Assembly: GCA_002269645.1 (NCBI GenBank)
Contig: NIVC01000380.1
Span: 186,001-250,000, forward strand
Origin: Macrostomum lignano
Lineage: Eukaryota
Length of the DNA: 64,000 nt
Direction of reading: 5' to 3'
Part shown: in pieces, positions 27,576 through 61,957 of the stretch
Layout: every line of letters starts with the position of its first letter
Numbering within the stretch: the first letter of the stretch is position 1
Notes under the pieces: model-generated
Database searches by the model: none
Seen by the model: only the letters and a program-made list of their open reading frames with translations
What the model was told of the DNA's origin: nothing
Translations under genes and position numbers: made by a program

Positions 27576-30500
27576 ATGCTGAAGCCACAGGTGTGGCTGT
27601 CCTTTTTAAAAGGATGCACTCAGCTTATTTTATTTCTAGGCAAGTATCAATAGAAATTCAGCATTTTTTATTGTGTCAAATTTATAGTTTGTTATCTTAT
27701 AATATATATTTTTTTATATTTTAGGAAGCCTATTGCGATACAACCTTTTCTCGCTTGTGTATTTGGTATTTTTGTTAGTCAGTCCACTGGTGCCATTTCA
27801 CAAAGAGAGTGAGTCATGCTTGTGTTTTTTATGAAAGTTATTAATGTAATAAAATAATTATTCAATAATATCTCCACCTTTGCAAAACACAGAACCATTC
27901 CTGATCTACAATGGCGCCCTGCTTGCCTGTAGTGGCCTGTTCACCTTAGCACAGATTGTATTTCAAATTGTGCTGGCTGCCTACCCACCATATGGCAGCC
28001 TTGTTAGTGATTGTAAGTGACAGAATTTATCATTTTCTTTTTATCTTTTACCTGTCATTTTTTAACCTGGATTTTTACTGTCAAACAAGTTAGACAACTG
28101 TTTACAGAAACTGTAGATTATCTGCTGTCAAACTGTTTACAGTGTCTGTAGATGATCTACTGTCAACCTGTTTACAGTGTCTGTAGATGATCTACTGTCA
28201 ACCTGTTTACAGTGTCTGTAGATGATATACTGTCAACCTGTTTACAGTGTCTGTAGATGATATACTGTCAAACTGTTTATAGAAACTGTAGATGATCTAC
28301 TGTCAACCTGTTTACAGTGTCTGTAGATGATCTACTGTCAACCTGTTTACAGTGTCTGTAGATGATCTACTGTCAAACTGTTTATAGAATCTGTAGATGA
28401 TCTACTGTCAAACTGTTTATAGAATCTGTAGATGATCTACTGTCAAACTGTTTATAGAATCTGTAGATGATCTACTGTCAAACTGTTTATAGAATCTGTA
28501 GATGATCTACTGTCAAACTGTTTACGGTAATATTAAACAGTAAATCAAATTTCCCATATTATCCAGGCTCCCTGGACCTGGCACTCCGCCAGATTGGTTT
28601 ACAATCCTTCGCTGATACGCAGGCTCAACATCTGGTTCGCCTGTTGCTGGCTGAACCTTTGACCTTAATTGTTAGCGCCGTATCGATCGGCATTGGCACG
28701 CGCAACAGGGATTGGTTGTTTCAGAGCTACCCTGCAGCCTCCGCCGCGGCCCCGCCTTCACCTGAACAGTCTGTTGTGTGTGCTGGAATTGACGCTACGG
28801 ATGGGGTTGCAGGTGAGGTATTGTGTAATTGTCACTATAGACAGTCAGATTGTCACTGACAGTCAGATTGTCACTATAGACAGTCAGATTGTCACTATAG
28901 ACAGTCAGATTGGCACTATAGACAGTCAGATTGTCACTATAGACAGTCAGATTGTCACTATAGACAGTCAGATTGTCACTATAGACAGTCAGATTGTCAC
29001 TATAGACAGTCAGATTGTCACTGACAGTCAGATTGTCACTATAGACAGTCAGATTGTCACTATAGACAGTCAGATTGTCACTATAGACAGTCAGATTGGC
29101 ACTATAGACAGTCAGATTGTCACTATAGACAGTCAGATTGTCACTATAGACAGTCAGATTGTCACTATAGACAGTCAGATTGTCACTATAGACAGTCAGA
29201 TTGTCACTATAGACAGTCAGATTGTCACTATAGACAGTCAAATTGTCACTATAGACAGTCAGATTGTCACTATAGACAGTCAGATTGTCACTATAGACAG
29301 TCAGATTGTCACTATAGACAGTCAGATTGTCACTATAGACAGTCAGATTGTCACTATAGACAGTCAGATTGTCACTATAGACAGTCAGATTGTCACTATA
29401 GACAGTCAGATTGTCACTATAGACAGTCAGATTGTCACTATAGACAGTCAGATTGTCACTATAGACAGTCAGATTGTCACTATAGACAGTCAGATTGTCA
29501 CTATAGACAGTCAGATTGTCACTACAGACAGTCAAATTGTCACTATAGACAGTCAGATTGGCACTATAGACAGTCAGATTGTCACTATAGACAGTCAGAT
29601 TGTCACTATAGACAGTCAGATTGTCACTATCGACAGTCAGATTGTCACTATAGACAGTCAGATTGTCACTGACAGTCAGATTGTCACTATAGACAGTCAG
29701 ATTGTCACTATAGACAGTCAGATTGTCACTATAGACAGTCAGATTGGCACTATAGACAGTCAGATTGTCACTATAGACAGTCAGATTGTCACTATAGACA
29801 GTCAGATTGTCACTATAGACAGTCAGATTGTCACTATAGACAGTCAGATTGTCACTATAGACAGTCAGATTGTCACTATAGACAGTCAAATTGTCACTAT
29901 AGACAGTCAGATTGTCACTATAGACAGTCAGATTGTCACTATAGACAGTCAGATTGTCACTATAGACAGTCAGATTGTCACTATAGACAGTCAGATTGTC
30001 ACTATAGACAGTCAGATTGTCACTATAGACAGTCAGATTGTCACCATAGACAGTCAGATTTTCACTATAGACATTCAAATTGTCACTGACAGTCAGATTG
30101 TCACTATAGACATTCAAATTGTCACTGATTGCCAGTTTACTATTTAATCTCCGGTCACTTTGCAGCAACAGAGGCGCAACAAGTCGCAGATGACCATCAC
30201 ACGCTGTCGATGGGTTTAAGGAAACTACGATCAATGCTGCTACATTTTTTGCTACTCTGCATTCTGTGCTCATGCGCTGTGTGCTCACCATCTGTGACCA
30301 CTAGCGTGTATATTGTAGCATTCCTGTTGGCTCTGCTAGTGTGGTCTATCGGTGGCCCAGGGCCAGACTCTCTAGCTATTGAGCGGGCTCGCCAGTGTAT
30401 GGCTATGTACGCTGCATTGCATCTGCTGGTTGTGTTCTGCTATCAGCTGCCCGTCACGCACCATATTCAAGGCCTGGAGCCCAACTCTACGGCTGCTAGG

Positions 30501-33500
30501 TAAATGTTCTTAATGTCTCTATGGGTCATTGGTCATTAGATTTCTATGGGTCATTGGTCATTAGATTTCTATAGGTCATTGGTCATTAGATTTCTATGGG
30601 TCATTGGTCATTAGATTTCTATGGGTCATTGGTCATTAGATTTCTATGGATCATTGGTCATTAGATATCTATGGGTCATTGGTCATTAGGTATCTATGGG
30701 TCATTGATCATTACATATCTATGGGTCATTGATCATTAGATATCTATGGGTAGCTGGTCATTAGATATCTATGGGTAGCTGGTCATTAGATATTTATGGG
30801 TAGCTGGTCATTAGATATCTATGGGTCATTGGTCATTAAATATCTATGGGTCATTGATCATTACATATCTATGGGTCATTGATCATTAGATATCTATGGG
30901 TAGCTGGTCATTAGATTTCTATGGGTCATTGGTCATTAAATATCAATGGGTCATTGATCATTACATATCTATGGGTCATTGATCATTAGATATCTATGGG
31001 TAGCTGGTCATTAGATATCTATGGGTAGCTGGTCATTAGATATCTATGGGTAGCTGGTCATTAGATATCTATGGGTCATTGGTCATTAGATATCTATGGG
31101 TAGCTGGTCATTAGATATCTATGGGTAGCTGGTCATTAGATATCTATGGGTAGCTGGTCATTAGATATCTATGGGTCATTGGTCATTAGATATCTATGGG
31201 TAGCTGGTCATTAGATATCTATGGGTAGCTGGTCATTAGATATCTATGGGTCATTGGTCATTAGATATCTATGGGTCATTGGTCATTAGATATCTATGGG
31301 TAGCTGGTCATTAGATATCTATGGGTCATTGGTCATTAGATATCTATGGGTCATTGATCATTAAATATCTATGGGTCATTGGTCATTAGATATCTATGGG
31401 TCATTGGTCATTAAATATCTATGGGTCATTGGTCATTAGATATCTATGGGTCATTGATCATTACGTAGCTCGTGTGTGTTGGTTGTGGCAGTCATTGAAT
31501 GTGTCCAATACAATCTACAAACACAACCCATTATCTAGAATGATGGGCCTGTACTACATGATCGAATCCAACTGTTCCACTAACGAAGTGTACTTCGATC
31601 GCCAAATTCGAGCAAACGAATATATCGAGCCTCTACTGTTGATTGGCTTTTATTTCTTTGCCTGCATGGTTATGTACCTGTGGAAAACCGATCCCTATCG
31701 GCGAAGGGTGAGTTAGCTGTTTAGGAATCGTACTTTTATTGTTTTATAACCACTTTTTAACTTAGTAACCTAGAAAAGATTTTTGAAGTTTTAATTGATT
31801 GAAATTCTGCGTTGTTTTGCATGAAGCACAAGTCTCCGGAGATAAAACATTGCTTCCCTCCTCACAGCACCAACCACCCCACAGCACCCACCACAGCACA
31901 GCACCCACCACACCACAGCACCCACCACCCCACAGCACCCACCACACCACAGCACCCACCACCCCACAGCACCCACCACACCACAGCACCCACCACCCCA
32001 CAGCACCCACCACCCCACAGCACCCACCACACCACAGCACCCACCACACCACAGCACCCACCACCCCACAGCACCCACCACACCACAGCACCCAACACAC
32101 CACAGCACCCACCACCCCACAGCACCCACCACCCCACAGCACCCACCACCCCACAGCACCCACCACACCACAGCACCCACCACCCCACAGCACCCACCAC
32201 ACCACAGCACCCACCACCCCACAGCACCCACCACACCACAGCACCCACCACCCCACAGCACCCACCACACCACAGCACCCACCACCCCACAGCACCCACC
32301 CCCAAAGCACCCCACAGAACCCTCGACAGAACCTACCCCACAGCACCCACCACCTCACAGCACCCACCCCCACAGCACCCACCCCCACAGCACCCAACAC
32401 ACCACAGCACCCACCACCCCACAGCACCCACCACCCCACAGCACCCACCACCCCACAGCACCCACCACACCACAGCACCCACCACCCCACAGCACCCACC
32501 ACACCACAGCACCCACCACCCCACAGCACCCACCACACCACAGCACCCACCACCCCACAGCACCCACCACACCACAGCACCCACCACCCCACAGCACCCA
32601 CCCCCAAAGCACCCCACAGAACCCTCGACAGAACCTACCCCACAGCACCCACCACCTCACAGCACCCACCCCCACAGCACCCACCCCCACAGCACCCACC
32701 CCACAGCACCCACCCCCCACAGCACCCACCCCACAGCACCCACCACCCCACAGCACCCACCCCCACAGCACCCTTTATACAGTGAACTGTATAAAGTAAA
32801 CTGTTGTGGCTACAAAGAATTGTCAGATTTAAACAAACGCAACTGTATCTAAATTTTTTAAATGCTCAACTTTTCAGCTCAAGATTTCTTTCTTGTCCAC
32901 CCGTTTACCAGAAATTTTATCTAGTACTAGTGTACTCTCAATATGTAATTTTAGATTAGTCAGTTATTATAATTGTTAATTTAAACAAAGAATATTTAAA
33001 TTGCACTCAATTTAGCACCGAGTATGCGAGTTGACCATACAGGTGCCAACACCTGATGCTGACCAATCTGTAAGTTAATAATATTCATAGTTTTAGTAAT
33101 AGTAATAATCAGCATTAATATCTGATTATAGTTCTTATATATTGTTAGCAAATTGGTTTTGTTTCATTTTTTTCTGGTAAATTATTTTACTATTAATTTA
33201 AATTTTTAATCCCATTACTTTGAGTTAGGACATCAATGGGGGTATTGTATGAAGTTATGGTTGAAGCTTTGCTCCCTAGATAGCAGCTGTAACCTATGCA
33301 TTTAAACCTGCACAAGTAAGATAATATATAATGGAGCACCTGAGTTAATCAATGAGTTTTTTTCTGTTGTTGTGTTACAAACTGTTTTAAACAAATTTTA
33401 ACGAAAATGGTACATTATAACGAGGCGGCCCAGGCTCGATTCCAAGTGCAGTCGCTATTAACTTGGGGCTAAATTGGAATCTCGGCTTGGCTCTGCTCGT

Positions 33501-44500: not shown

Positions 44501-47500
44501 CGTTGTTAGGCCGTTGCTAGGCCGTTGCTAGGCCGTTGTTAGGCCATCGCTAGGCCGTCATTAGGCCATTGTTAATCTGTTGCTAGGCCGTTGCTGGGCT
44601 GTTGTTAGGCCGTCGCTAGGCCGTTGTTAGGCCGTTGTGAGGCCGTTGCTGGGCCATTACTAGACCGTCGCTGGGCCTCGCTAGGCCGTTGCTTGGCAGT
44701 TGCTTGGCGGTTGGCGGTTGAAAAGCCATGGCTAGGCTGTTGCTAGGCCGTTTCTAACCCCTCGTACGCAACCTATGAAATTATTACCTATAAAGAAAAA
44801 GCATTTAAAAAAATTTCAGGTAAAAATCAGCGTTACCGAGTTCCAGCCTGAGCCAGGACCGTCTGCTGTGGCCCAGCAGGATGCCGAACTACTCGAAAGT
44901 TTAAACGCCCTAAAATCGGCCGAAACAGTGGAAGATGAAGCCATCGAAGACGATGATAAACCGAAACAGCCTCGTTGCCAGGCGGCACTCAAACTGCTCC
45001 AGCTGGTCTGTGAGAAGCTGGACAGCCAGACAGCGGATTACCGCAACATCAAAGAGCAGATGCTAGCCAGCCAATTAGACGCCAAAGCCGCTCGTTTAGC
45101 CGAAGCTGAGCCGCTTCTGCACGACGATTCGGACTCGGCCGCGTCCGGTCGTCAGGTGCAATTAAAAATTCGCAACTTCCCGGAAGAGCTGATCTCTCCT
45201 GGCAGGGTTGGAGCTCGCGAACTGGAGACGGTGCAGCCTCTGCAACCGGCTGGGAGTTGGTCTCAGACTATGTCTAGACTGGCTCTGCTGCTGCAGTACC
45301 TGGTGTTGAGCAGGCTAACACCTATCTGTTACATTGCTATGGTAGCCTATTATCTAGTACAGTTCACCCTGTTCGCTCTGTACTATCCTCTGGTAGTGTT
45401 CCTATGGGGCATGATGTCGTCCCCTTATCCAACTAAACGATTCTGGTTCGCCTCTATGACCTATACAATGTTTCTAATATTGTTTAAATATTCCTTGAAG
45501 TTTTCTCCGATTAATAAATTATTATTAAATAGCGAGGATGCCTTTGCTAAATGGCTGTCGTTCGAGGCTCAGGTGTCGGAGGCCACTCCAGTTAGCGAGC
45601 TGTGCCTATTGGCTTTGCTGTTTGTTCAGCGCAGCAATTTGAAACGCTACGGCTTGTGGAACATCTCGCGTCGGAATCTGCAGCCTGAAAGGGGTGAGAA
45701 TAGATGGATTGCTAATCTAGTCTGTGGATTGCTATTGTAGTCTGTGGATTGCTAATCTAGTCTGTGGATTGCTATTCTAGTCTGTGGATTGCTAATCTAG
45801 TCTGTGGATTGCTATTCTAGTCTGTGGATTGCTATTCTACTCTGTGGATTGCTATTCTAGTCTGTGGATTGCTATTCTAGTCTGTGGATTGCTATTCTAG
45901 TCTGTGGATTGCTATTCTACTCTGTGGATTGCTATTCTAGTCTGTGGATTGCTATTCTAGTCTGTGGATTGCTAATCCAGTCTATGGATTGCTAGTCTAG
46001 TCTATGGATAGCTAATCTAATGGATTGCTAGTCTAGTCTATGGATAGCTAATCTAATGGATAACTAATCTAGTCTATAGATTGCTAATCTAGTGTGTGGA
46101 TTAGTAATCTACTGTGTAGATAGCTAGTCTAGTCTATGGACTGCTAGTCTAGTCTATGGACTGCTAGTCTAGTCTATGGATTGCTAATCTAGTCTGTGGA
46201 TTGCTAATCTAGTCTGTGGATTGCTAATCTAGTCTGTGGATTGCTAATCTAGTCTATGGATATTTATTATTTTAGAAGCCAACAGCAGCTGCGAACAATG
46301 TCCCGATGATGACGAGGCCACTCCAGCTGAGGCGGCGCCAGGCCCCTCCTCTGCCTCAGCGGCTGATGCAGTGAGCAGTTCTGCCAACCTTCTGCGCAAG
46401 CGTAAAACTGGCGTTGCCAATTCAGCCGAGGATTTCGAGAGACTGCAACAGGGAGCTGCGACTGATGGAGGAGACGTGAGTTTTGTGATCAGATTAGAGT
46501 TTCAACTTTTTATGACAGGAGTGAGGGTGTAGAATTTAAGGGTGAGATTTCGGAGCCTTGTCCAGAATCTAAGGCGTGAGATTTCGGAGCCTTGCCAAGA
46601 ATCTAAGGTGTGAGATTTCGGAGCCCATACTCAGAATCTAAGGTGTGAGATTTCGGAGCCTTGTCCAGAATCTAAGGTGTGAGATTTCGGAGCCTTGTCC
46701 AGAATCTAAGGTGTGAGATTTCGGAGCCTTGTCCAGAATCTAAGGTGTGACATTTCGGAGCCTTGTCCAGAATCTAAGGTGTGACATTTCGGAGCCCATA
46801 CTCAGAATCTAAGGGGTGAGATTTCGGAGCCTTGCCCAGAATCTAAGGGGTGAGATTTCGGAGCCCATACTCAGAATCTAAGGGGTGAGATTTCGGAGCC
46901 CATACTCAGAATCTAAGGCGTGAGATTTCGGAGCCCATACTCAGAATCTAAGGTGTGAGATTTCGGAGCCTTGCCAAGAATCTAAGGTGTGAGATTTCGG
47001 AGCCTTGTCCAGAATCTAAGGTGTGAGATTTCGGAGCCTTGTCCAGAATCTAAGGTGTGACATTTCGGAGCCCATACTCAGAATCTAAGGTGTGAGATTT
47101 CGGAGCCTTGTCCAGAATCTAAGGTGTGAGATTTCGGAGCCCATACTCAGAATCTAAGGTGTGAGATTTCGGAGCCCATACTCAGAATCTAAGGTGTGAC
47201 ATTTCGGAGCCCATACTCAGAATCTAAGGTGTGACATTTCGGAGCCCATACTCAGAATCTAAGGTGTGACATTTCGGAGCCCATACTCAGAATCTAAGGT
47301 GTGACATTTCGGAGCCCTACTCAGAATCTAAGGGGTGAGATTTCGGAGCCTTGCCCAGAATCTAAGGGGTGAGATTTCGGAGCCCATACTCAGAATCTAA
47401 GGGGTGAGATTTCGGAGCCATACTCAGAATCTAAGGTGTGAGATTTCGGAGCCATACTCAGAATCTAAGGGGTGAGATTTCGGAGCCTTGCCCAGAATCT

Positions 47501-50500
47501 AAGGGGTGAGATTTCGGAGCCCATACTCAGAATCTAAGGGGTGAGATTTCGGAGCCATACTCAGAATCTAAGGTGTGAGATTTCGGAGCCTTCCTTCAAA
47601 TCAACAGCTAGAATAAGATTTCTAGATTCGAATCTCAGGTTGAGATTTTGGACTTCTCGAAATTAAAGGTTTTCAACTATTCAAAGAAGGCATAATTTTT
47701 AGCACAAACCAACAATTCTGGATGCCCAATATATGCCTACTATATGTATATACATTACCTATCGTTTTATATCTAGTCAGAACATGCGGGTATTTCAGCA
47801 CTATAAAATATTCCATTACACGCGCGAACTGGATATAAGCTCTCAATAGGTTGTTTTCGCTTCATTAACGCTGCAGACATAAATATGCACAGTTATTTGT
47901 AGCCAAAACCGTGCTTTGCCTTATGATTTCATTTGTGCGTATCGTAATAGCAGATTATAATTTTTTTCTATCAGCTTGTTAGGCTATTCGCGTGTTATTC
48001 GCGTGTTTTTGCATCTAATTATGATACTTTGAGTGTATTGTTTTACTTTACTGATATATATCGTAGTATTTTTTATTTGCCGATATGTATCGTAGTTTAC
48101 TTTACTTTACCGATATGTAGCGTAGTTTACTTTACTCTACTGGTATGTATCGTAGTATTTTTTATTTGCCGATATGTATCGTAGTTTACTTTACTTTACT
48201 TAACCGATATGTATCGTAGTTTACTTTACTTTACTATACCGATATGTATCGTAGTTTACTTTACTTTACTTTACCGATATGTATCGTAGTTTACTTTACT
48301 TTACTTTACCGATATGTATCGTAGTTTACTTTACTTTACTTTACCGATATGTATCGTAGTTTACTTTACTTTACTTTACCGATATGTATCGTAGTTTACT
48401 TTACTTTACTTTACCGATATGTATCGTAGTTTACTTTACTTTACTTTACCGATTTGTATCGTAGTTTACTTTACTTTACTTTACCGATTTGTATCGTAGT
48501 TTACTTTACTTTACTTTACCGATATGTATCGTAGTTTACTTTACTTTACTTTACCGATTTGTATCGTAGTTTACTTTACTTTACTTTACCGATATGTATC
48601 GTAGTTTACTTTACTTTACTTTACCGATATGTATCGTAGTTTACTTTACTTTACTTTACCGATTTGTATCGTAGTTTACTTTACTTTACTTTACCGATAT
48701 GTATCGTAGTTTACTTTACTTTACTTTACCGATTTGTATCGTAGTTTACTTTACTTTGCAGATATGTAGCGTAGTTTACTTTACTTTACCGATATGTAGC
48801 GTAGTTTACTTTACTCTACTGGTATATATATCGTAGTTTACTCTACTTTAGCGATATGTATCGTAGTTTAGTTTACTCTACCGATATGTATCGTACTTTA
48901 CTTTACTTTACCAATAAGTGTCATAGTTTACTATACCGATATGTATCGTAATTTTAATCAATAGGAAGAGGTGAAATCCACATCGGAGGCGACCACAACC
49001 CAAGCTCAGCCTGGCTCACCGGCGACCTCCTCGTTCCTGTGGAACTGTCTGACTCTGCACCCGTTTCGCGAATTCTATAAAAAAGTTGCCGCAGGCAGCG
49101 TGTCGGTTCGAGTCGACCTCTATTCGTCCATGTTCGCCTTTGAGTTCTTGTCGCTGCTTATCATCTTCTTTGGCTACACCAGCGGCTTTGCAGACTCCGG
49201 CATCAGTGATGACGTCAATATTCTCACCTACTTCTCTAAGGAAGAGGTTGGTTTCTGTGTCTGGGTGTCTGTTTTTGTGTCTGGGTGTCTGTTTTTGTGT
49301 CTGGGTGTCTGTTTTTGTGTCTGGGTGTCTGTTTCTGCGTCTGTGTGTGTGTTTCTGTGTCTGGGTGTCTGTGTCTGTTTCTGTGTCTGGGTGTCTGTTT
49401 CTTTGTCTGGGTGTCTGTTTCTGTGTCTGGGTGTCTGTTTTTGTGTCTGGGTGTCTGTTTTTGTGTCTGGGTGTCTGTTTCTGTGTCTGGGTGTCTGTTT
49501 TTGTGTCTGGGTGTCTGTTTCTGTGTCTGGGTGTCTGTTTCTGTGTCTGGGTGTCTGTTTCTGTGTCTGGGTGTCTGTGTCTGTTTCTGTGTCTGGGTGT
49601 CTGTTTCTTTGTCTGGGTGTCTGTTTCTGTGTCTGGGTGTCTGTTTTTGTGTCTGGGTGTCTGTTTTTGTGTCTGGGTGTCTGTTTCTGTGTCTGGGTGT
49701 CTGTTTTTGTGTCTAGGTGTCTATTTATAGTAATAGCATCACAACATGGCATACTGAATGTCAAGCAGCATCAATTGTATTCATTCTAGATTCCGCTGAC
49801 GCTAACTCTCACTCTGTTCGTGCAATTCTTCCTCATGCTGCTGGATCGCGGCCTGTTTCTTACAAAATCGCGCTCAGGAAAGTACTTCTTCCACATTGTG
49901 CACGTCATTCTGCTGCACGTGTACCTGAAATTCGTGCTGCCGACTTTGTCCTCGTGAGTTGGTGTTGGCATGCAAATTTACTTTTTTGAGTCTGGTTACA
50001 GTAAAACTAAGCATGAGTAGTGCGCCTTACTGAGGATCTGTGGTGTTGAGCCCAAATCCTCAGTTTCTGGGCCAGCCTCCCAGATCCTCAGTTGCTGGGC
50101 CAGCCTCCCAGATTCTCAGTTTCTGGGCCAGCCTCCCAGATCCTCAGTTACTGGGCCAGCCTCCCAGATTCTCAGTTGCTGGGTCAGCCTCCCAGGTCCT
50201 CAGTTGCTGGGCCAGCCTCCCAGAGTGTCAGTTGCTGGGCCAGCCTCCCAGATCCTCAGTTACTGGGCCAGCCTCCCAGATTCTCAGTTGCTGGGTCAGC
50301 CTCCCAGATCCTCAGTTTCTGGGCCAGCCTCCCAGATCCTCAGTTTCTGGGCCAGCCTCCCAGATCCTCAGTTTCTGGGCCAGCCTCCCAGATCCTCAGT
50401 TTCTGGGCCAGCCTCCCAGATCCTCAGTTTCTGGGCCAGCCTCCCAGATCCTCAGTTTTTTGCCAGCCTCCCAGAGTGTCAGTTGCTGGGCCAGCCTCCC

Positions 50501-53326
50501 AGAGTGTCAGTTGCTGGGTCAGCCTCCCAGAGTGTCAGTTGCTGGGCCAGCCTCCCAGAGTGTCAGTTGCTGGGCCAGCCTCTCAGATCCTCAGTTGCTG
50601 AGCCAGCCTCCCAGATTCTCAGTTGCTGTGCCAGCCTCCCAGTCCCAGATCCTCAAGTTGCTGGGCCAGCCTCCCAGAGTGTCAGTTGCTGGGCCAGCCT
50701 CCCAGATCCTCAGTTGCTAGGCCAGCCTCCCAGATCCTCAGTTGCTAGGCCAGCCTCCCAGATCCTCAGTTGCTAGGCCAGCCTCCCAGATCCTCAGTTG
50801 CTAGGCCAGCCTCCCAGATCCTCAGTTGCTAGGCCAGCCTCCCAGAGTGTCAGTTGCTGGGCCAGCCTCCCAGATTCTCTGTTGCTAGGCCCTCATCAGA
50901 GTTCCTCCTGCACCGCAGGCCGGAGTACATCGCGGAGAGCTTCGTCATCAAGCTATTCTACATATCAAAGTGCATCTACTTCGCCCTATCGGCCAGTCAA
51001 ATTCTATCCGGCTATCCATCTCGCGTGCTCGGCAATTTCCTATGCAAAGGTCACAACTATTTGAATCTGTTCTCTTTCAAACTGTACATGCTGGTGCCGT
51101 TTTTATTTGAACTGCGCTCCATCATGGACTGGATGCTGAGCAATACGGCATTGAGCGTGTCTCACTGGCTACTAATGGAAGACATGCACAGTTTAATATT
51201 CGTGTCCAAGTGCTGGCGGAGAGCTGAGATCGCCTACCCAACTGAGCGGGCCAAGAACCGGCCTCCGTGCTACAAGTATTGCCCCGGAGTGTGGCTCATT
51301 GTACTCATAGTGGCCTGCATCTGGGCGCCGCTGCTCTGGTTCTCCGTAATGAGTAGCGTGTTTTTAGAGACTAACGCTATCACATCCTGCACTTCTGAAC
51401 TGACTTTGTCGTCTTATACGCCTTTGTACACGTTGAAGACCACCACTGTGATACCCTTCACTGATAGCGACTCAGATGTTGTTAGAGTCTGCTTCTCGGA
51501 TGGTAGCAACTCTTCGGTGAGAGAGGGAGGTGGATGAAGGAGGGAGGTAGAGGGCGGATGAAGGGAGAGGGAGAGGGCGGATGAAGGGAGAGAGAGAGAG
51601 AGAGAGAATGGATGAAGGTAGAGGGAGAGGGCGGATGAGGGAGAGAGTGTACAGCTGAGGGAGAGACGGAGAGGGCGGATGAGGGAGGGAGTGTACAGCT
51701 GAGGGAGAGAGGGAGAGGGCGAATGAGAGAGGGAGTGTACAGCTGAGGGAGAGAGGGAGAGGGCGGATGAGGGAGGGAGTGTACAGCTGAGGGAGAGACG
51801 GAGAGGGCGGATGAGGGAGGGAGTGTACAGCTGAGGGAGAGACGGAGAGGGCGGATGAGGGAGAGAGTGTACAGCTGAAGGAACAATCCGAGCCCTTTAC
51901 CCGAATCCCCCGCAGTCATCGGCGAAGCGAATCGGGTCTCTGCTCAGCTCAACAACGGCCTACACTGTGCAGTTCAATGGCATGTCAAGCGTGCTGTGGA
52001 CCATCACTCCCCCGGCCAGAGCAGCACTCACCAATGAGCTGGCCGGCAATGGCTCGGTTCAGCTGGCATTCCGACTCGAATGCCTTCGAGAGAAGGACAG
52101 CGGAGTGGCTCGTACGGTGGTGTTCAGGCAGGACCTGCTGCAGGGCAGCGATATGAGGATTGAGCTGCTGCGCGTGAGGAAACCCTTGTGACACTTGTTT
52201 TTTGGTCACCTATTGATACTTCATTCACTAATGCATCGCCATTTACCCGCATTCACCACTGATAACACTGTCACCCACATTTTATTATCTATCTATCTTC
52301 ATCAATCAAAGAACATCCACAGCCACCACCTTTACTCACAGCCACCCACATTCACTCAAATTTACCCACATTCACTCACATTCACCCACATTCACTCAAA
52401 TTCACCCACATTCACTCAAATTCACCCACATCCGCCCAAATTCACTCAAATTCACCCACATCCACCCACACGTCCACCCATTTTCATCCATTATAAGTTC
52501 ACCAAAATTTACTAACAGAATAACAAAAATGCCACCTTAATTCACCCACAGTGCCCACTGCAACCATTCCCTAACCGGGCCCCATTCACCCCAACTCGCA
52601 CAGGTGCTGCAAAACTCCACAGCGAATCCGTGGGTGATATTCCGCAGCATCGGCACCAGGTTCCTTCTGTTACGCGGCGATTCCACCGTCATGACTGGCC
52701 TGACGGGCCTGCCAAAGGAGCTCATCGACTTGCGAACGCCGATTAGTCTGGAGGCCAAGTTGAACTCTTCCGGCCAGTCTTCGGACATCTCCTGGTGGCA
52801 GCTGAGCGACCTGTACAGCGGCAGCCACCTGTGCCCAGGCAATTATTCTAATCCGCCTACAGAAGGCGAGGCTCACGACTCTCTCCGGTTGGTGCTGCTG
52901 TCGCAGCGGTCGCGCTCGGAGAACCGCCTGATTCAAGCTATTCAGAAGGTCGGCATGTACGGCATTCTGTCTGTGTTCCTCATCTCCATAGCTAGGATAT
53001 TGCGATCGGGCATTGTGCCAGTTCACTATCTGGTAGCCTATATTGAAATGCCTCACGTGGACAGAATCCTGGCTATTATTAATGACATCTATTTGGTCCG
53101 AGAGACTGGCGATCTGCAACTAGAAGAAGAATTGTTCGCCAAGTTGCTGTTCCTGTTCAGGTCGCCTTCAATGCTGCTGAGGTACAGTCAGACTCCCGAG
53201 AGCATTCTGGCGCAGTTCTATCGTCAGCCGGAGGCTGTTGAATATCCAGCTGATGATGACGCTGACAGCGACGGAGGCGGAGCCCGAGGAGGTGCTTCGG
53301 CCAAGTCTAGGACTAAAACTGAGTGA
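27576..53326 (+). CDS. PIEZO: Piezo-type mechanosensitive ion channel, full length (~2607 aa; 2627 aa with two micro-exons)
   Basis: Exons 27576-27639, 27725-27808, 27893-28012, 28567-28812, 30166-30499, 31539-31707, [33043-33069], [33924-33956], 35101-36012, 36534-36682, 37376-37671, 38217-38386, 38652-38825, 39486-40215, 41325-41478, 42250-42922, 43599-44048, 44820-45693, 46276-46475, 48965-49246, 49790-49953, 50919-51516, 51916-52173, 52604-53326. All phases match; 7824 nt without micro-exons. Motifs: [56 protein letters not shown] (PFEW), [38 protein letters not shown]. Confidence 0.97.
28090..28525. repeat. ~33-bp minisatellite in Piezo intron 3
   Basis: Unit CTGTAGATGATCTACTGTCAA(C/A)CTGTTTA(CAGTGT/TAGAAT). 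Confidence 0.9.
28828..30128. repeat. 21-bp minisatellite in Piezo intron 4, ~60 copies
   Basis: Unit GACAGTCAGATTGTCACTATA; source of the IDSQIVT ORF. Confidence 0.97.
30515..31462. repeat. 25-bp minisatellite in Piezo intron 5
   Basis: Unit TCTATGGGTCATTGGTCATTAGATA. Confidence 0.95.
31862..32772. repeat. C/A-rich 17-18-bp minisatellite in Piezo intron 6
   Basis: Units CACAGCACCCACCAC(AC/CCC); internal ~290-bp duplication marked by CCCCAAAGCACCCCACAGAACCCTCGACAG at ~32301 and ~32603. Confidence 0.93.
33420..33660 (+). mobile_element. SINE-like element (family B, copy 3)
   Basis: B-box-like GGCTCGATTCC; GTGTACATGCCTAACGAT at 33544; GCGCGCTTGTG...CTGCTCAGGGG...GAATG shared with the copies at 16.7 and 17.6 kb. 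Confidence 0.45.
34245..34992. repeat. 45-bp minisatellite in Piezo intron
   Basis: Unit TTGAGTAGCAGGTGTGAATCAATGTGACAGCTAATTATATAGAGA, about 16 copies. Confidence 0.95.
36060..36435. repeat. Degenerate ~22-bp TGTATGATTTATGAC repeat in Piezo intron
   Basis: Direct reading. Confidence 0.85.
36750..37315 (+). repeat. CACTCTACCCTACCCTC-type pyrimidine-rich repeat (intron before exon 37376-37671)
   Basis: Direct reading. Confidence 0.9.
37690..38082 (-). repeat. GGGTAGGGTAGAGTGAGGC repeat, reverse complement of the upstream intron repeat
   Basis: 19-bp units; 37745-37776 is complementary to 37261-37292 at 31 of 32 positions. Confidence 0.9.
38391..38632. repeat. (TCTG)n microsatellite in Piezo intron
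   Basis: Direct reading. Confidence 0.96.
38862..39395. repeat. 21-bp minisatellite containing TTAGGG
   Basis: Unit GACTAGGTTAGG(G/C)TTTGGAGT, about 25 copies. Confidence 0.95.
40362..41302. repeat. 21/23-bp minisatellite in Piezo intron
   Basis: Unit CAGACACTTGCAGAGACATTT; source of the RHLQRHF ORFs. Confidence 0.96.
41582..41870 (+). mobile_element. tRNA-headed SINE with CORE-like central domain and A-rich tail
   Basis: A-box TAGCCTAGTGG (41590), B-box GGTTCGATTCT (41634), then GTCTTTGAACAAGACACTTAACTC...CAGTTCACCCAGCTGTAAAATGGG resembling the MIR/CORE domain (CTTGGGCAAGTCACTTAACCTC...CAGTTTCCTCATCTGTAAAATGGG); tail TAATAAAAAATAAAA. Confidence 0.75.
41935..42213. repeat. (CAGT)n/(CAGG)n compound microsatellite
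   Basis: Direct reading. Confidence 0.95.
42950..43538. repeat. 30-bp minisatellite in Piezo intron
   Basis: Unit TCACTCTGATAAACAAAAATCGCCCTCTAG. Confidence 0.93.
44130..44758. repeat. ~22-bp minisatellite in Piezo intron
   Basis: Unit CTAGGCCGTTGTTAGGCCATCG. Confidence 0.92.
45703..46260. repeat. 20-bp minisatellite in Piezo intron
   Basis: Unit TCTAGTCTGTGGATTGCTA(T/A). Confidence 0.93.
46520..47592. repeat. 34/35-bp minisatellite in Piezo intron
   Basis: Unit CAGAATCTAAGGTGTGAGATTTCGGAGCC(TTGTC/CATACT). Confidence 0.95.
48050..48952. repeat. 35-bp minisatellite with near-palindromic core
   Basis: Unit ACCGATATGTATCGTAG(TTTAC)3TTT; core CGATA-TG-TATCG. Confidence 0.93.
49250..49722. 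repeat. 20-bp GT-rich minisatellite in Piezo intron
   Basis: Unit GTGTCTGGGTGTCTGTTT(C/T)T. Confidence 0.94.
50058..50890. repeat. 28-bp minisatellite (array 1 of 2)
   Basis: Unit GGGCCAGCCTCCCAGATCCTCAGTT(G/T)CT. Confidence 0.95.
51520..51880. repeat. GA-rich repeat in Piezo intron
   Basis: GAGGGAGAGGGCGGATGAGGGAG(A/G)GAGTGTACAGCT units. Confidence 0.85.
52335..52505. repeat. 20-bp ATTCACCCACATTCACTCAA repeat in last Piezo intron
   Basis: Direct reading. Confidence 0.8.
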
Positions 53327-53404: not shown

Positions 53405-53840
53405 TTTCAACCTACTTATCTACCGACCCAACCTACTTATCTACCTACCCAATCTACTCATCTACCTACCCTACCTACTTATCTACCTACCCAATCTACT
53501 CATCTACCTACCCTACCTACTTATCTACCTACCCAATCTACTCATCTACCTACCCTACCTACTTATCTACCTACCCAACCTACTTATCTAGCTACCCAAC
53601 CTACTCATCTACCTACCCTACCTACTTATCTACCTACCCAATCTACTCATCTACCTACCCAACCTACTTATCTACCCACCCAACCTACTTGACTATCTAC
53701 CCAACCTACTTGACTATCTACCCAACCTACTTGGCTATCTACCCAACCTACTTGACTATCTACCCAACCTACTTGACTATCTACCCAACCTACTTGACTA
53801 TCTACCCAACATACTTGACTATCTACCCAACCTACTTTTC
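53405..53840. repeat. CCTAC/TCTAC-rich 21-bp repeat downstream of Piezo stop (3'UTR region)
   Basis: Units CCTACTTATCTACCTACCCAA grading into CCTACTTGACTATCTACCCAA. Confidence 0.9.
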
Positions 53841-54721
53841 ACACATGCAATCTTATTTTCACAGACTCAATTAGCGTCACAAATTGTCAAGCATCTCAGT
53901 GTAGTAAAAAGCACCATTTCCAGAATAGCAAATCAAATTTGAAACGCAATTTCAATAAACTCGGTCACGAGAATGTGTCTTTGTTCCGGTTTCAATGTAT
54001 TCATTTTTTCTTTGCAAAAATTTTACCGCGAAATTTTTCCCCTAAAGTTATTTCTCCCGACCTGCTGACATATTTGATTTGCAATTGCCCCTATGCTTAA
54101 AATACTATTGAATCATTGGGCACATGCTTGTGGCAATCCGCTACTCCAGGCTACTGCGATGAATTGTATCGATATGCCAAAGTTCATTTATTCAATATTA
54201 ATTATGATGATATAATATTCAGTATACACTACTTACTAGGGTATGTGGTCGAATTCTGTATTTCGTCTATTAGTTGTAAATTTATTTATCTAAATTGCAG
54301 TATTGTCCCAGATCCCTGTGTATGCGTGTGTGTTATTATTTTATTTACACTGGTCATTCCGCGATAATCTATGTATTTATTTAATTGTATTGCTGCAATG
54401 CTAGAGGCTAATACAAATCATTAAATCATTTTTTAAAACTATAATTATGTATCAGAAATTTGCAAAAGTATTAATTAATCAATTACTAAATTTAATCAAA
54501 CTATCATGTGTCATATTTTGTGAGTTCGGTTCGCGTAATTATTGGTACGACTAAATTTATTGTAACATCATTTATGAGTGAGCTATGTAATAATTAAACA
54601 GAATTTTATCCTGATCAACTTATTTTTTCGAATGGAAATCTCCGTTTTGCGCGGTATTGTTTGCACTGACTGTCCTTTATTTGCTTTTTTTAACTAAATC
54701 ATCCTTTTTCACTGCCCACAG

Positions 54722-55572
54722 ACACCAGCCTCCCAGAGTGTCAGTTGCTGGGCCAGCCTCCCAGATCCTCAGTTGCTGTGCCAGCCTCCCAAATCCCCAG
54801 TTGCTGGGCCAGCCTCCCAGAGTGTCAGTTGCTGGGCCAGCCTCCCAGAGTGTCAGTTGCTGGGCCAGCCTCCCAGAGTGTCAGTTGCTGGGCCAGCCTC
54901 CCGGATCCTCAGTTGCTGGGCCAGCCTCCCAGATCCTCAGTTGCTGTGCCAGCCTCCCAAATCCCCAGTTGCTGGGCCAGCCTTCCAGATCCTTAGTTGC
55001 TGGGCCAGCCTCCCAGAGTGTCAGTTGCTGGGCCAGCCTCCCAGAGTGTCAGTTGCTGGGCCAGCCTCCCAGAGTGTCAGTTGCTGGGCCAGCCTCCCGG
55101 ATCCTCAGTTGCTGGGCCAGCCTCCCAGATCCTTAGTTGCTGGGCCAGCCTCCCAGATCCTCAGTTTTTTGCCAGCCTCCCAGAGTGTCAGTTGCTGTGC
55201 CAGCCTCCCAGATCCTCAGTTGCTGTGCCAGCCTCCCAAAGTGTCAGTTGCTGTGCCAACCTCTCAGAGTGTCAGTTGCTGGGCCAGCCTCCCAGATTCA
55301 CAGTTGCTGGGCCAGCCTCCCGGATCCTCAGTTGCTGGGCCAGGGCCAGCCTCCCAGATCCTCAGTTGCTGGGCCAGCCTCCCGGATCCTCAGTTGCTGG
55401 GCCAGCCTCCCAGATCCTTAGTTGCTGGGCCAGCCTCTCAGATCCTCAGTTGCTGGGCCAGCCTCCCAGATCCTCAGTTGTTGGGCCAGCCTCCCAGATC
55501 CTCAGTTGCTGGGCCAGCCTCTCAGATCCTCAGTTTTTTTGCCAGCTTCCCAGAGTGTCAGTTGTTTTTTAT
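54722..55572. repeat. 28-bp minisatellite (array 2 of 2), same unit and orientation as 50058-50890
   Basis: GGGCCAGCCTCCCAGA(TCC/GTG)TCAGTTGCT units with the same rare variants (CAGTTTTTTGCCAGC). Confidence 0.95.
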
Positions 55573-55714
55573 CCAGCTTCCCTGATCCCTTATTCCATTC
55601 AATATAATATTTCAAGCAGCGAACTAATTGAGGAATATCTTCTTTAATGTTCAGTTGATACAAAGATAGTTGAGCAAATAACACAGAAATCCAGCTTCAA
55701 AGTTCGAACACACA

Positions 55715-58451
55715 ATGAGCAGCGGTGTCAGGCCCAACAGCGCAACAGGCAGCAGTCAGCACCAAGTAGACAGTGTGCTGTCAGCAGCTGTGTACTCCCA
55801 TCTGCAGCGACTGGTGGGCACCGCTGCGGCCAAACTTCGAACCGAGAGCGAATCGATTGACGAATCGTCTGAGAAAGCCGCGGTTGGTGGTTCTCCGATT
55901 AGCTGTTGATGAATAATATTATTGTGTATTACAGATAAGAAACGATTGGGATTAAAGTTCAGGAACCAATATGATTAGAGATTAGGAACCATTAGGATTA
56001 GAGATTAGGAACTATGAGGATTAGCGATAAGGAACTATAAGGATTAGCGATAAGGAACTATGAGGATTAGAGATTATGAAGCATTAGAATTAGAGATTAG
56101 GAACAATAAGGATTAGAGATAAGAAACCATGAGGATTAGAGATTAGGAACCATGAGGATTAGAGATAAGAAACCATGAGGATTAGAGATTAGGAACCATA
56201 AGGATTAAGAGATTAGGAACCATGAGGATTAGAGATTAGGAACCATGAGGATTAGAGATAAGAAGTAGCCATGAGGATTATAGATTAGGAACCATGAGGA
56301 TTAGAGATTAGGAACCACTAGGATTAAAGATTAGGAACCATGAGGATTAAAGATAAGGAACAAAGAGTTAAAGTTTAGGAACGATTAGGATTAGAGATTA
56401 GAAACGATTAGGATTAGAGATTACGAAAGATTAGGATAGGATTAGAGATGTTAGGGACCGGCAGAAATGGTGACAACAGGTCATATAGCTTTAGGATTTT
56501 GTATCCAATTCAGCTTGCAATATCACAGTTCCACAGGCGCCTGGTCAGCAGATGGCTGGCAGCGCACCGCCTGAAAGAAGACGGGGCCAATGCCAAGCAA
56601 CAGAAGCAGACAGATTCTCCCGCACTGACGGCATCTCAGTCTGAATTGCTGGTCTCGCAGCTGCGCTCCTTGGTCAGGCAGGAGGCCAAGCTTCTGACAA
56701 AATGCGCTGGCGAACATCTTCAGTCGCCCGAACTGCGGGAGGCTGCAAGAAGAGAGAAGCTGAGGCTGCTAGATGAAGCTGCAGAAGCTGTCAGCAGTTT
56801 GGAGAAGGTACGGTTTGCTTTTTACGATTCAGATGGGGTATTGTACCTCGCAGACTGGTCGGGTACAATAGAGGGTCACATACTCTTCAGGAGGGTTACA
56901 GACTCTTCAAGAGGGTTACAGATTCTTCAGGGGGTCACAAACTCTTCAGGAGGGGTATAGGCTTGTCAGGAAGGTCAGACTCTTCAGGAGGGTTACAGAC
57001 TCTTCAGGAGGGTCACAGACTCTTCATGAGGGTTACAGACTCTTCAGGAGGGTCACAGACTCTTCAGGGGGGTTACAGACTCTTCATGAGGGTTACAGAC
57101 TCTTCATGAGGGTTACAGACTCTTCATGAGGGTTACAGACTCTTCAGGAGGGTTACAGACTCTTCAGGAGGGTTACAGACTCTTCAGGAGGGTTACAGAC
57201 TCTTCATGAGGGTTACAGACTCTTCATGAGGGTTACAGACTCTTCAGGAGGGTTACAGACTCTTCATGAGGGTTACAGACTCTTCATGAGGGTTACAGAC
57301 TCTTCATGAGGGTTACAGACTCTTCATGAGGGTTACAGACTCTTCAGGAGGGCTACAGACTCTTCAGGAGGGTTACAGCATATCAAAAATAGTGGTTACA
57401 GACACGCCAGGATGTCAGGAGAGGCGGGCTACAGACACGCCAGGATGTCAGGAGAGGCGGGCTACAGACACGCCAGGGTGTCAGGAGAGGCGGGCTACAG
57501 ACACGCCAGGGTGTCAGGAGAGGCGGGCTACAGACACGCCAGGATGTCAGGAGAGGCGGGCTACAGACACGCCAGGGTGTCAGGAGAGGCGGGCTACAGA
57601 CACGCCAGGGTGTCAGGAGAGGCGGGCTACAGACACGCCAGGGTGTCAGGAGAGGCGGGCTACAGACACGCCAGGATGTCAGGAGAGGCGGGCTACAGAC
57701 ACGCCAGGATGTCAGGAGAGGCGGGCTACAGACACGCCAGGATGTCAGGAGAGGCGGGCTACAGACACGCCAGGATGTCAGGAGAGGCGGGCTACAGACA
57801 CGCCAGGATGTCAGGAGAGGCGGGCTACAGACACGCCAGGATGTCAGGAGAGGCGGGCTACAGACACGCCAGAGTGTCAGCTGGTTTACCGTCAATTGTA
57901 AATTTAAGACTCGCACTTAAAACAAATTATCCACCCTGATGACAGTCTGTATCGCAGCTGACACAGTCGCTGTTGGATCTGGTGCCTGCAGCAGCCTCAA
58001 CTGACGCTGCCTCATCTTCCTTGGATCGCAGCTCCGTAGCCGCGACTCTATTGAGAGATTCCGAACGTCTGCGCTCTCATTGCGTCACTTTGTTAGTCAA
58101 ACTGAAGTTGGACACCTGCCAGGTGCGGCAGGCTACTTATAGCGCTGAGAGGTTGAAGAAACTGCAGGATGTGAGGTGAGTCGGCAGCAACGCCTACCTG
58201 CTTCATTTGGTGTTGATAAAAAAGGGAAAAAATTGCACGGCAAAAACCTTCCTCTGGCTTCCAGGTGCCGAATAGTCTCGCAACGGGCCGAGTTGCTAGA
58301 CGAAATCAATCGATTGAGGGAGATGTCGCTTCGCTACCAGGCGTCCGAGGCGCAGGCAGAGTACAGACGGCTGATGGCTGCTCAGGTTGAGCTGGGAAAG
58401 TCTGTGCAGCTGCTCAAGTACAGCCTGGGATATGACAGCTGCGACTCCTAG
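55715..58451 (+). CDS. HAUS4: HAUS augmin-like complex subunit 4-like protein, 288 aa
   Basis: Exons 55715-55882, 56514-56807, 57958-58175, 58265-58451; phases 0,0,2; 867 nt = 289 codons. C-terminal RLRSHCVTLLVKLKLDTCQVRQATYSAERLKKLQDVR resembles HAUS4 (KCKCMLMKLRMEELKILSDTYTVEKVEVHRLIR). Family assignment is from recalled sequence. Confidence 0.65.
55965..56445. repeat. 23-bp degenerate minisatellite in HAUS4-like intron 1
   Basis: Unit GAGGATTAGAGATTAGGAACCAT. Confidence 0.88.
56885..57378. repeat. 20-bp minisatellite in HAUS4-like intron 2
   Basis: Unit GACTCTTCA(G/T)GAGGGTTACA. Confidence 0.94.
57395..57877. repeat. 33-bp minisatellite in HAUS4-like intron 2
   Basis: Unit GACACGCCAGG(A/G)TGTCAGGAGAGGCGGGCTACA, about 14 copies. 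Confidence 0.96.
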
Positions 58452-60984: not shown

Positions 60985-61957
60985 TCACGGCAGGGTGGCA
61001 AAGAAGTCTCGAATCTCGGTTTCGTTCATGTAGCTGCTGCCGATTGCGATGGCCCTGACCGAGCCTTTGAACAGATTGGCATCATTGTACCGCTTGCCGA
61101 ACCGAAAGCAGAACTTCGACAACGAAATAGAATCAGTAAAAGTTTGAAAATCGATGGCAGACATCGGCAAGAAGGAGCCGTTCACAAACATTCCATAAGA
61201 GTCCGTTGTCGGTGTCGATGTGAATCCGAAGTCAATCCACTCGCTGGCGTTCGGGGTGAGAATGGCTGACGACATGATGCTGTAACGTACAGAATTAGTA
61301 TCGTAGAAGATGACGTACAATCTTGATACTGAGGAATACTCCCAGATGTGGTGGTAGAAAGGTCCTGTGGCAAAGTTGGCGCAGTCTAAGAATTCAAACA
61401 GCGGCTGCACCTGTGGCTGCCGCTTCATCCTGAGCAGCACCGTGACGCCTGTGCCGAACCCGATGTCGCTCTTGTTCATGGCCAGAAACGAGCTGCTCCC
61501 ATCGAACGCGGCGCCCTCTTCTGTCCACTGGACTCCGACCGGATAAATTCGGTTGGTCTCTTCGTCAGCCTGGCACACGACATTCTCAAATGCAGACATG
61601 TCGTCTCCGAGCCACACGTTTGTGAGCTTCGGGTTGAGCTGAGCCGGATATTTGATCGGAAATCGGATGAGCACTCGGCAGTCGCTGCTCGCACCGCCAG
61701 AGACAAGATCGCGACTGGTAGCGGAAGAGACTGCAGCGGAGAGAGGCCGGCTCGAACTGGGCAACGACAATTCCGGATGGAAAGGCATCGGTCGCCTGCA
61801 TGCTGCAGTGCTGTTCCGTGAATGCCTTGGAGATGCGGAAGGCGGCAGCATCGGACAGGCAGTGCACCTGCATCTGAGTCCAGGTGTCTCCGGTCCTGCA
61901 CTGGCACACAGCCAGCAGGCACGACATGAACAGCGCGATTCCTAGAACTTTTGACAA
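60985..61957 (-). CDS. Secreted PAN/apple-like + LamG/concanavalin-like protein, interrupted by a frameshift near 61700-61720 (possible pseudogene)
   Basis: Frame A (61957-~61710): hydrophobic signal-like leader and Cys-spaced segment (VHC...HCS...RCSLF). Frame B (~61710-60985): FDGSSSFL...VTVLLRMK...EWIDFGFT...MFVNG...FRFGKRYNDANLFKGSVRAIAIGSSYMNETEIRDFF, a typical LamG-like beta-sandwich pattern. Confidence 0.6.

Follow-up and report, generated by a model that had tools for sequence, protein, structure and literature searches.

A natural serine at the transmembrane gate of Piezo channels from the flatworm Macrostomum lignano

Introduction

What becomes of a Piezo channel when the hydrophobic residue at its transmembrane gate is replaced, in nature, by a polar one? 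The question is raised by a stretch of 64,000 nucleotides from the flatworm Macrostomum lignano (contig NIVC01000380.1 of assembly GCA_002269645.1, positions 186,001 to 250,000 of the forward strand) – referred to here as the window and numbered from its first letter – which contains a Piezo gene with a serine at the position of V2476 in mouse Piezo1. The segment in question encodes the pore-lining inner helix and the proximal C-terminal domain (CTD) of a Piezo channel whose gene is intact and under selective constraint. The family is well known and this member of it uncharacterised; what sets it apart is a natural departure at one site that is held to be invariant. We lean towards the reading that a transmembrane gate of reduced hydrophobicity is a family trait of the M. 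lignano Piezos, fixed and selected, that would be expected to slow inactivation moderately.

In mouse Piezo1, structures and molecular dynamics place a hydrophobic transmembrane gate at V2476 (bioRxiv 10.1101/2023.09.28.559900; PMC12951647), which together with L2475 forms the LV inactivation gate, a pair that published work takes to be all but invariant across Piezo orthologues. The valine is conserved, and the pore narrow, at the equivalent V2366 of Caenorhabditis elegans PEZO-1, whose authors nonetheless call inactivation multi-locus (PMC12951647). Mutagenesis by Zheng, Gracheva and Bagriantsev (2019, eLife, PMC6349400) showed that the inactivation rate of mouse Piezo1 tracks the hydrophobicity of the gate residues: the inactivation tau rises from 11.9 to 46.8 ms in V2476S (about fourfold slower), to 62 ms in L2475S and to 103 ms in the L2475S/V2476S double mutant, while selectivity, threshold and basal current are unchanged in these LV-to-Ser mutants. 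In Piezo2, V2751A – at the site equivalent to V2476 – likewise slows inactivation (PMC6349400). Mutations of the constriction neck residues M2493/F2494 (the MF site) shift tau by 1.6-2.7x in Piezo1, MF/AA slowing it within that range, but MF/QQ is without effect in Piezo2, and abolishing inactivation in mouse Piezo1 needed LV/QQ and MF/QQ combined (PMC6349400). A review (PMC7796548) reports that the adjoining acidic pair, E2495/E2496, affects unitary conductance, the block of the pore and its selectivity for Ca2+.

A first-pass annotation of the window, made from its letters, had placed the Piezo inner helix and CTD at 52955-53050 and read them as belonging to a naturally slow- or non-inactivating paralogue with altered selectivity. 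The placement holds; the reading has to be divided, as parts of it concern rare residues and parts concern positions that vary widely.

A complete Piezo gene

The gene occupies positions 27576-53326 of the plus strand and encodes 2625 amino acids in about 22 coding exons. Residues 1-2625 of its product – identified by cluster look-up as NCBI PAA84339.1/BOX15_Mlig022252g1 of M. lignano (P0152) – map by tblastn as collinear blocks onto 27576-53323; the entire gene therefore lies inside the window, and its reading frame there is intact over the whole 2625 amino acids. Five Pfam Piezo families (Piezo_TM1-24, TM25-28, THU, THU9_anchor and cap) all score above their gathering thresholds on the product, with E values from 8e-138 to 5e-29. 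An HMMER scan of 1.84 billion representatives recovered a 100% identical protein (P0002) and, besides it, just two matches below 1e-30; cluster look-up assigns all of these to M. lignano. Public databases already list the gene, under the label of an unnamed or ‘Piezo-type’ protein, and apart from its gate serine the locus is an ordinary, catalogued Piezo gene. An older model of it (P0004, UniProt A0A1I8JRB2) has 635 amino acids, is fragmented and frame-shifted and lacks the inner helix; automated annotations of this locus are unreliable for pore residues.

The last exon (52604-53326, plus strand) begins after the acceptor cag/GTG at 52603/52604 and ends with a TGA at 53324-53326, encoding 240 amino acids: the second half of the cap, followed by inner helix and CTD. 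It matches the Pfam Piezo_cap family (E 7e-32) and, at E 3e-16 to 7e-13, every solved Piezo chain, namely Piezo1 and Piezo2 of mouse and human, C. elegans PEZO-1 and 9W7X, a 2551-residue chain that we take to be the Drosophila channel. Canonical GT/AG borders were found at the three C-terminal exons checked (50920-51516, 51916-52173 and 52604-53326). In an AlphaFold2 model built for the C-terminal 506 residues – with a mean predicted local distance difference test score (pLDDT) of 67.9 – anchor helices come first, followed by the outer helix, the beta-sandwich cap, the inner helix (segment residues 374-403) and a helical CTD; being a monomer, and so uninformative on pore-facing side chains in the trimer, the model served to define helix boundaries and the fold. 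Foldseek aligns this pore-module model with those of Piezo1, Piezo2 and PEZO-1 at E values from 4e-29 to 7e-24, the best being mouse Piezo1, with PEZO-1 at about 1e-24. On the combined strength of sequence and predicted fold, membership in the Piezo family is not in doubt.

Placing the serine

The inner helix lies at 52925..53014 (plus strand, as are all codons given below), corresponding to residues ~2493-2522 and to ~2456-2485 of mouse Piezo1. Whether a serine within it stands at the gate depends on the alignment register, which is well defined. HMMER aligns last-exon residues 116-196 with residues 2464-2544 of the mouse Piezo1 chain 5z10_A over 81 residues each, free of gaps, and so equates the serine with V2476, the alanine of the neck with M2493 and the following isoleucine with E2495. 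The same ungapped register appears in a MAFFT alignment of 14 pore modules, in which the glycines of a G-x-x-G motif (columns G383/G386) and the proline equivalent to Pro2498 (P416) are invariant and the column of Arg2482 (R400) nearly so. In the raw sequences of 150 homologues, with the helix anchored on the arginine and the neck on the proline, the two are 16 residues apart in almost all cases, as are R2519 and P2535 here. The gap-free register on R2482 and P2498 proposed in the first-pass annotation is thus upheld by all three approaches, and the codons it named are exact: TCC for the serine at 52985-52987, GCC for the alanine at 53036-53038 and ATT for the isoleucine at 53042-53044.

A shifted register was considered, in which the upstream GMY would represent a conserved G[LMI]Y followed by a three-residue insertion; it would break the invariant G-x-x-G columns and was rejected. 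Displacement of the serine from V2476 is further ruled out by an [AGS]-[RK]-x-x-R motif 2-6 residues 3' of it and by the canonical arginine-to-proline spacing of 16.

In this register the LV pair reads Ile2512 (ATC, 52982..52984) and Ser2513 (TCC, 52985..52987), so that position 2475 is still hydrophobic while 2476, the hydrophobic transmembrane-gate residue of the mouse channel, is not, and the pair, highly conserved in Piezos though no formal criterion of the family, is broken. Further up the helix, Leu2507 (CTG, 52967..52969) takes the place of Y2470, and four residues beyond the serine Ile2517 (52997-52999) that of F2480. Pro2524 (CCA, 53018..53020), at the position of E2487, falls where the inner helix gives way to the first helix of the CTD, a break that the AlphaFold2 model shows as a non-helical interruption at segment residues 404-406. 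The constriction neck and acidic pair, M2493-F2494-E2495-E2496 in the mouse, are represented by Ala-Tyr-Ile-Glu 2530-2533 (GCC TAT ATT GAA, 53036..53047), that is by Ala2530 (GCC) for M2493, Ile2532 (ATT) for E2495 and a retained Glu2533 (GAA, 53045-53047) for E2496. Only one of the two gate positions is therefore polar, and the MF site reads AY, a single change; the combination of polar residues at both 2475 and 2476 with a disrupted MF site is not what this gene carries.

Rare and ordinary substitutions

How unusual these residues are was gauged from the 150 homologues, which collapse into 115 distinct inner-helix/neck strings outside M. lignano. Position 2476 is occupied by V in 64 of them, L in 33, F in 7, A in 5, I in 4 and M and G in one each, and never by serine. 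Equally absent are leucine at 2470, where 113 of the 115 have tyrosine, and proline at 2487, where G, E, N, D or S chiefly occur. Judged from this survey, the gate serine, Leu2470 and Pro2487 are a real rarity.

The remaining differences belong to positions at which Piezos commonly vary. Methionine stands at 2493 in 80 strings and isoleucine in 17, the other 18 bringing the non-Met total to 35/115, two of them with alanine; 2495 is acidic in 67 and non-acidic in 48 (42%), once as isoleucine; 2480 is F, L, M, V or I, with isoleucine in 10. At 2496, E or D is found in 102 (Glu in 64), tyrosine at 2494 is common (28/115) and isoleucine occurs at 2475 in 11. By the same sequence comparison, M2493A, E2495I and F2480I are ordinary invertebrate variation, and so give no ground for predicting altered selectivity. 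The first-pass annotation had itself allowed that its substitutions might prove to be the common invertebrate state; this is the case for the variable positions 2493, 2495 and 2480, but not for S2476, L2470 and P2487 (0/115 each).

Comparison with individual channels draws the same line. The linker and neck between 2487 and 2495 are variable in C. elegans PEZO-1 (9UOX/9UOY/9ZIS) and in the presumed Drosophila Piezo (9W7X) as well, which makes the CTD differences of M. lignano ordinary; yet PEZO-1 (V2366) and the fly channel (Leu, GLYTTFVLLASRFMK) both retain the hydrophobic gate, unlike M. lignano. Neodermatan flatworms, too, have a residue other than methionine at 2493 – C, K and C in the trematode Paragonimus westermani (KAA3682259.1) and the monogeneans Protopolystoma and Cichlidogyrus, respectively, and A, S, P or R in further sequences with the neodermatan inner-helix motif – while keeping Tyr2470 and L, V or F at 2476, again unlike M. 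lignano. When metagenomes were scanned for close relatives with the serine, only distant Piezos of 40-52% identity were returned, and those in which the inner helix was recovered (L003, L004 and L006) have leucine at 2476.

Three Piezo lineages share the serine

M. lignano possesses at least three Piezo lineages (58-65% identical): the window gene; a second gene, paralogue B (BOX15_Mlig015119g1, P0001; 65% identical); and a group formed by PAA69190, PAA78665 and PAA72971 (P0154, P0155 and P0003; 58-64% identical), which reads ...FVISIARVLRAGIIPRHYLVMYVDMP. Word-indexed homologue searches had given 1 and 8 proteins, and the repertoire described here was assembled from the full HMMER scan and cluster look-ups. 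All three lineages carry Ser2476, Leu2470 and Pro2487, with the gate motif FL/VIS(I/V)AR, whereas residue 2493 differs among them (A, P and M), the other two reading PYVD and MYVD where the window gene has AYIE.

The serine is encoded by TCC in the window gene and by TCT in paralogue B. Between these two, synonymous divergence (dS) is ~1.1 and the ratio of nonsynonymous to synonymous divergence (dN/dS) 0.12 over 84 inner-helix/CTD codons, values that mark the duplication as old, with purifying selection acting on both copies. By sequence, the Ser2476/Leu2470/Pro2487 triplet appears to have been fixed before the family split into its three or more lineages and to have been kept in all of them, as a property of the clade rather than of one copy. 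The first-pass annotation attributed the trait to a single paralogue, and in this it does not stand.

The exon structure of the copies differs. In paralogue B (L001, ~2700-2730) an intron lies directly before the AIQKVGMYG codons, the upstream frame there containing stop codons, while in the window gene the end of the cap and the inner helix form one continuous exon (52604-52950), so that an intron must have been gained or lost between the paralogues.

What the serine might do to inactivation

Any kinetic consequence we infer by analogy with the mouse channel. A ring of three serine hydroxyls would render the narrowest membrane-spanning constriction less hydrophobic; de-wetting of the pore and its collapse into the inactivated state would then be harder, and current decay somewhat slower than in a Val-gated Piezo. 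The engineered V2476S and L2475S/V2476S mouse channels (PMC6349400) are the closest parallel in having serine at the gate, but they combine it with L or S at 2475, whereas the flatworm protein has Ile2475, some 70% other differences and a natural, selection-maintained state. The premise of the first-pass annotation that a hydrophilic change at V2476 slows mouse Piezo1 is borne out by these mutants, and a slow-inactivating M. lignano Piezo is a fair but unproven hypothesis.

Several points weigh against it. How large the net kinetic effect would be, and even in which direction it would go, is uncertain. The cap, blades, lipids and partner proteins also act on inactivation. Mouse L2475I inactivates faster, with a tau of 2.8 ms (PMC6349400), and M. 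lignano has isoleucine there – a substitution that the first-pass annotation missed and that, by mouse analogy, opposes the effect of the serine. Channels with intact LV and MF sites can still inactivate slowly; inactivation is multi-locus, which makes the gate site a weak predictor across backgrounds that are ~30% identical, and the literature places the origin of slow inactivation in native settings elsewhere than the LV gate. The hydrophobic constriction could instead be formed by phenylalanine at 2473 or isoleucine at 2480, both of which lie roughly a helical turn away from the serine. The homologues surveyed were the best 150 of 535 matches and barely sample plants and protists, and M. 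lignano may have a fourth, Val-gated Piezo, although none of 20 further high-scoring homologues whose source was looked up is attributed to this species; they come from other animals or lack a source label. Finally, our search of the literature for flatworm or Macrostomum Piezo physiology returned nothing relevant, its ‘piezo’ matches being microinjection devices; it found no published flatworm Piezo recording, nor any paper describing a gate with a naturally polar residue.

The main rival to moderately slowed inactivation is a compensated, kinetically ordinary channel, in which near-neutral drift has moved the hydrophobic gate to Phe2473 and Ile2475/2477/2480, inactivation is that of an ordinary invertebrate Piezo, and Ser/Leu/Pro are a co-adapted signature of the lineage. 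We regard this as possible. The remaining pore-facing positions (I2469, F2473 and I2480) are still hydrophobic, and S2472, the single polar residue of the mouse inner helix, is valine here, so that a polar and an apolar position have in effect been swapped within the helix; three co-occurring lineage-specific changes suggest co-adaptation, and isoleucine at 2475 favours fast inactivation. However, polar or smaller substitutions at the V2476-equivalent site slowed two mammalian backgrounds (Piezo1 V2476S and Piezo2 V2751A), and the residue at 2476 is hydrophobic or small in 115 of the 115 other strings, which argues for functional constraint. A bolder version of the preferred reading, on the doubtful side in our judgement, holds that the Macrostomum Piezos work without a hydrophobic Val/Leu membrane gate altogether, closing and inactivating mainly through the cap, the lateral plug and the constriction neck and passing sustained currents.

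Unlikely, by contrast, is the reading from which the work started, in which V2476S, M2493A and E2495I together make this particular copy a naturally slow- or non-inactivating paralogue with altered conductance and Ca2+ selectivity. It can appeal to the slowing of mouse Piezo1 by V2476S and by MF/AA alike (PMC6349400), to the reported role of E2495/E2496 in Ca2+ selectivity, conductance and block (PMC7796548) and to the absence of the serine from every other homologue surveyed. Set against this, V2476S alone slows inactivation only ~4x; the effect of alanine at the MF site, a further premise of the first-pass annotation, is real in Piezo1 but limited to 1.6-2.7x, with MF mutations ineffective in Piezo2; and L2475I acts in the opposite direction. 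Non-inactivation does not follow from one serine and one alanine when its full loss in the mouse took LV/QQ and MF/QQ together, and the serine, shared by all three lineages, is not specific to one paralogue. As for selectivity, LV-to-Ser mutants are unchanged and E2496 is kept, so the proposed alteration comes down to the variable position 2495, non-acidic in 48/115. It is extremely improbable that the serine instead stems from an alignment in the wrong register, from an error of sequencing or assembly, or from a pseudogene decaying in a polyploid genome, even though the M. lignano genome abounds in repeats and near-duplicate copies and model P0004 is visibly garbled: the register is agreed by two alignment methods and motif anchoring, and the same serine occurs at three independent loci. 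A pseudogene or assembly artefact, in particular, is effectively excluded by the intact 2625-residue frame, the canonical splice junctions at the three C-terminal exons checked, the TCC/TCT serine codons and the dN/dS of 0.12.

The current account of how Piezo channels close and inactivate centres on the LV gate, and M. lignano offers a natural exception to it, maintained by selection in three copies, from which one could learn whether the kinetics of inactivation are set by gate hydrophobicity in distant backgrounds as well. Were the serine to prove silent, the gate would be relocatable within the helix; if these channels indeed worked without a hydrophobic gate, they would provide a natural test of the hydrophobic-gate model in an animal amenable to transgenesis.

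Other features of the pore module

The M. lignano protein resembles mouse and human PIEZO1 (5Z10, 6B3R, 7WLT and 8YEZ) and PIEZO2 (6KG7) in its domain set, the PF(X2)E(X6)W motif, R2482, P2498, the distal CTD and the fold, but its pore module is only ~28-33% identical to theirs and its cap is shorter. Relative to mouse Piezo1, its differences include V2476S, L2475I, Y2470L, E2487P, M2493A, E2495I and, in the distal CTD, E2537S.

The exon at 50920..51516 (plus strand) encodes the anchor and the outer helix and runs into the cap; it forms a 100% tblastn block for residues 2101-2299 and is followed by a donor GT after 51516. Within it the PF(X2)E(X6)W motif starts at residue 2160 (~51097-51132), with its glutamate at residue 2164 (codon ~51109-51111); none of its P, F, E and W columns varies across the 14 aligned pore modules. 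The first-pass annotation was right that this glutamate and the distal CTD (LEEELFAKL...RSP) are conserved. Two further pore-module changes are specific to the lineage: in the M. lignano paralogues the conserved anchor sequence MDW-x-W-T-D-T (~51124-51135; alignment columns 52-56) has become MDWMLSNT or MDWMLTNT, with leucine for the second tryptophan, and the outer-helix ‘IWFP’ reads IWAP.

The next exon, 51916..52173 (plus strand, preceded by an acceptor AG and followed by a donor GT), encodes cap residues ~2300-2385 of PAA84339.1. In the part of the cap encoded at ~52730-52770 (alignment columns 340-360), the acidic patch DEEED 2393-2397 of the mouse channel, which reportedly promotes cation conduction, is not recognisable; the loop reads PKELID in the window gene and PAKKLN in paralogue C. 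The alignment is not secure in this loop, and several other invertebrates likewise have a weak patch.

Beyond the neck, the conserved distal CTD (PHVDRIL...YLVRE..., 53051..53221, plus strand) spans the invariant or near-invariant alignment columns P416-P454 and model helices 418-472, and a low-complexity acidic/Gly tail separates it from the stop codon. At the second CTD constriction, formed in the mouse by P2536/E2537 within ‘RSPETM’, all three M. lignano paralogues read RSPSML, with serine for glutamate; RSPSM lies at ~53162-53176 (residues 2572-2576), and RSPS or RSPA is found in a few other homologues as well.

Introns and flanking DNA

In the flanks of the gene, an open stretch upstream of it at 16968-17492 (plus strand) gives a weak match to a Maf1 regulator (E 0.005, below the gathering score), and the long open stretches at 3-1043, 17881-18582 and 60988-61941 (minus strand) have no Pfam match. 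Many of the long ‘open reading frames’ of the window are translated microsatellites.

Nearly every intron of the Piezo gene (28096-51882) is filled largely by a distinct minisatellite of its own, with units of 17-45 bp repeated in 12-62 copies at 87-95% matches; examples are 28828-30126 (21 bp x 62), 30518-31463 (25 bp x 38) and 46531-47590 (34 bp x 31). Minisatellites also occur downstream of the gene, at 53408-57880, where the array at 54725-55554 has a 28-bp unit identical to that of the array at 50051-50891 inside the gene.

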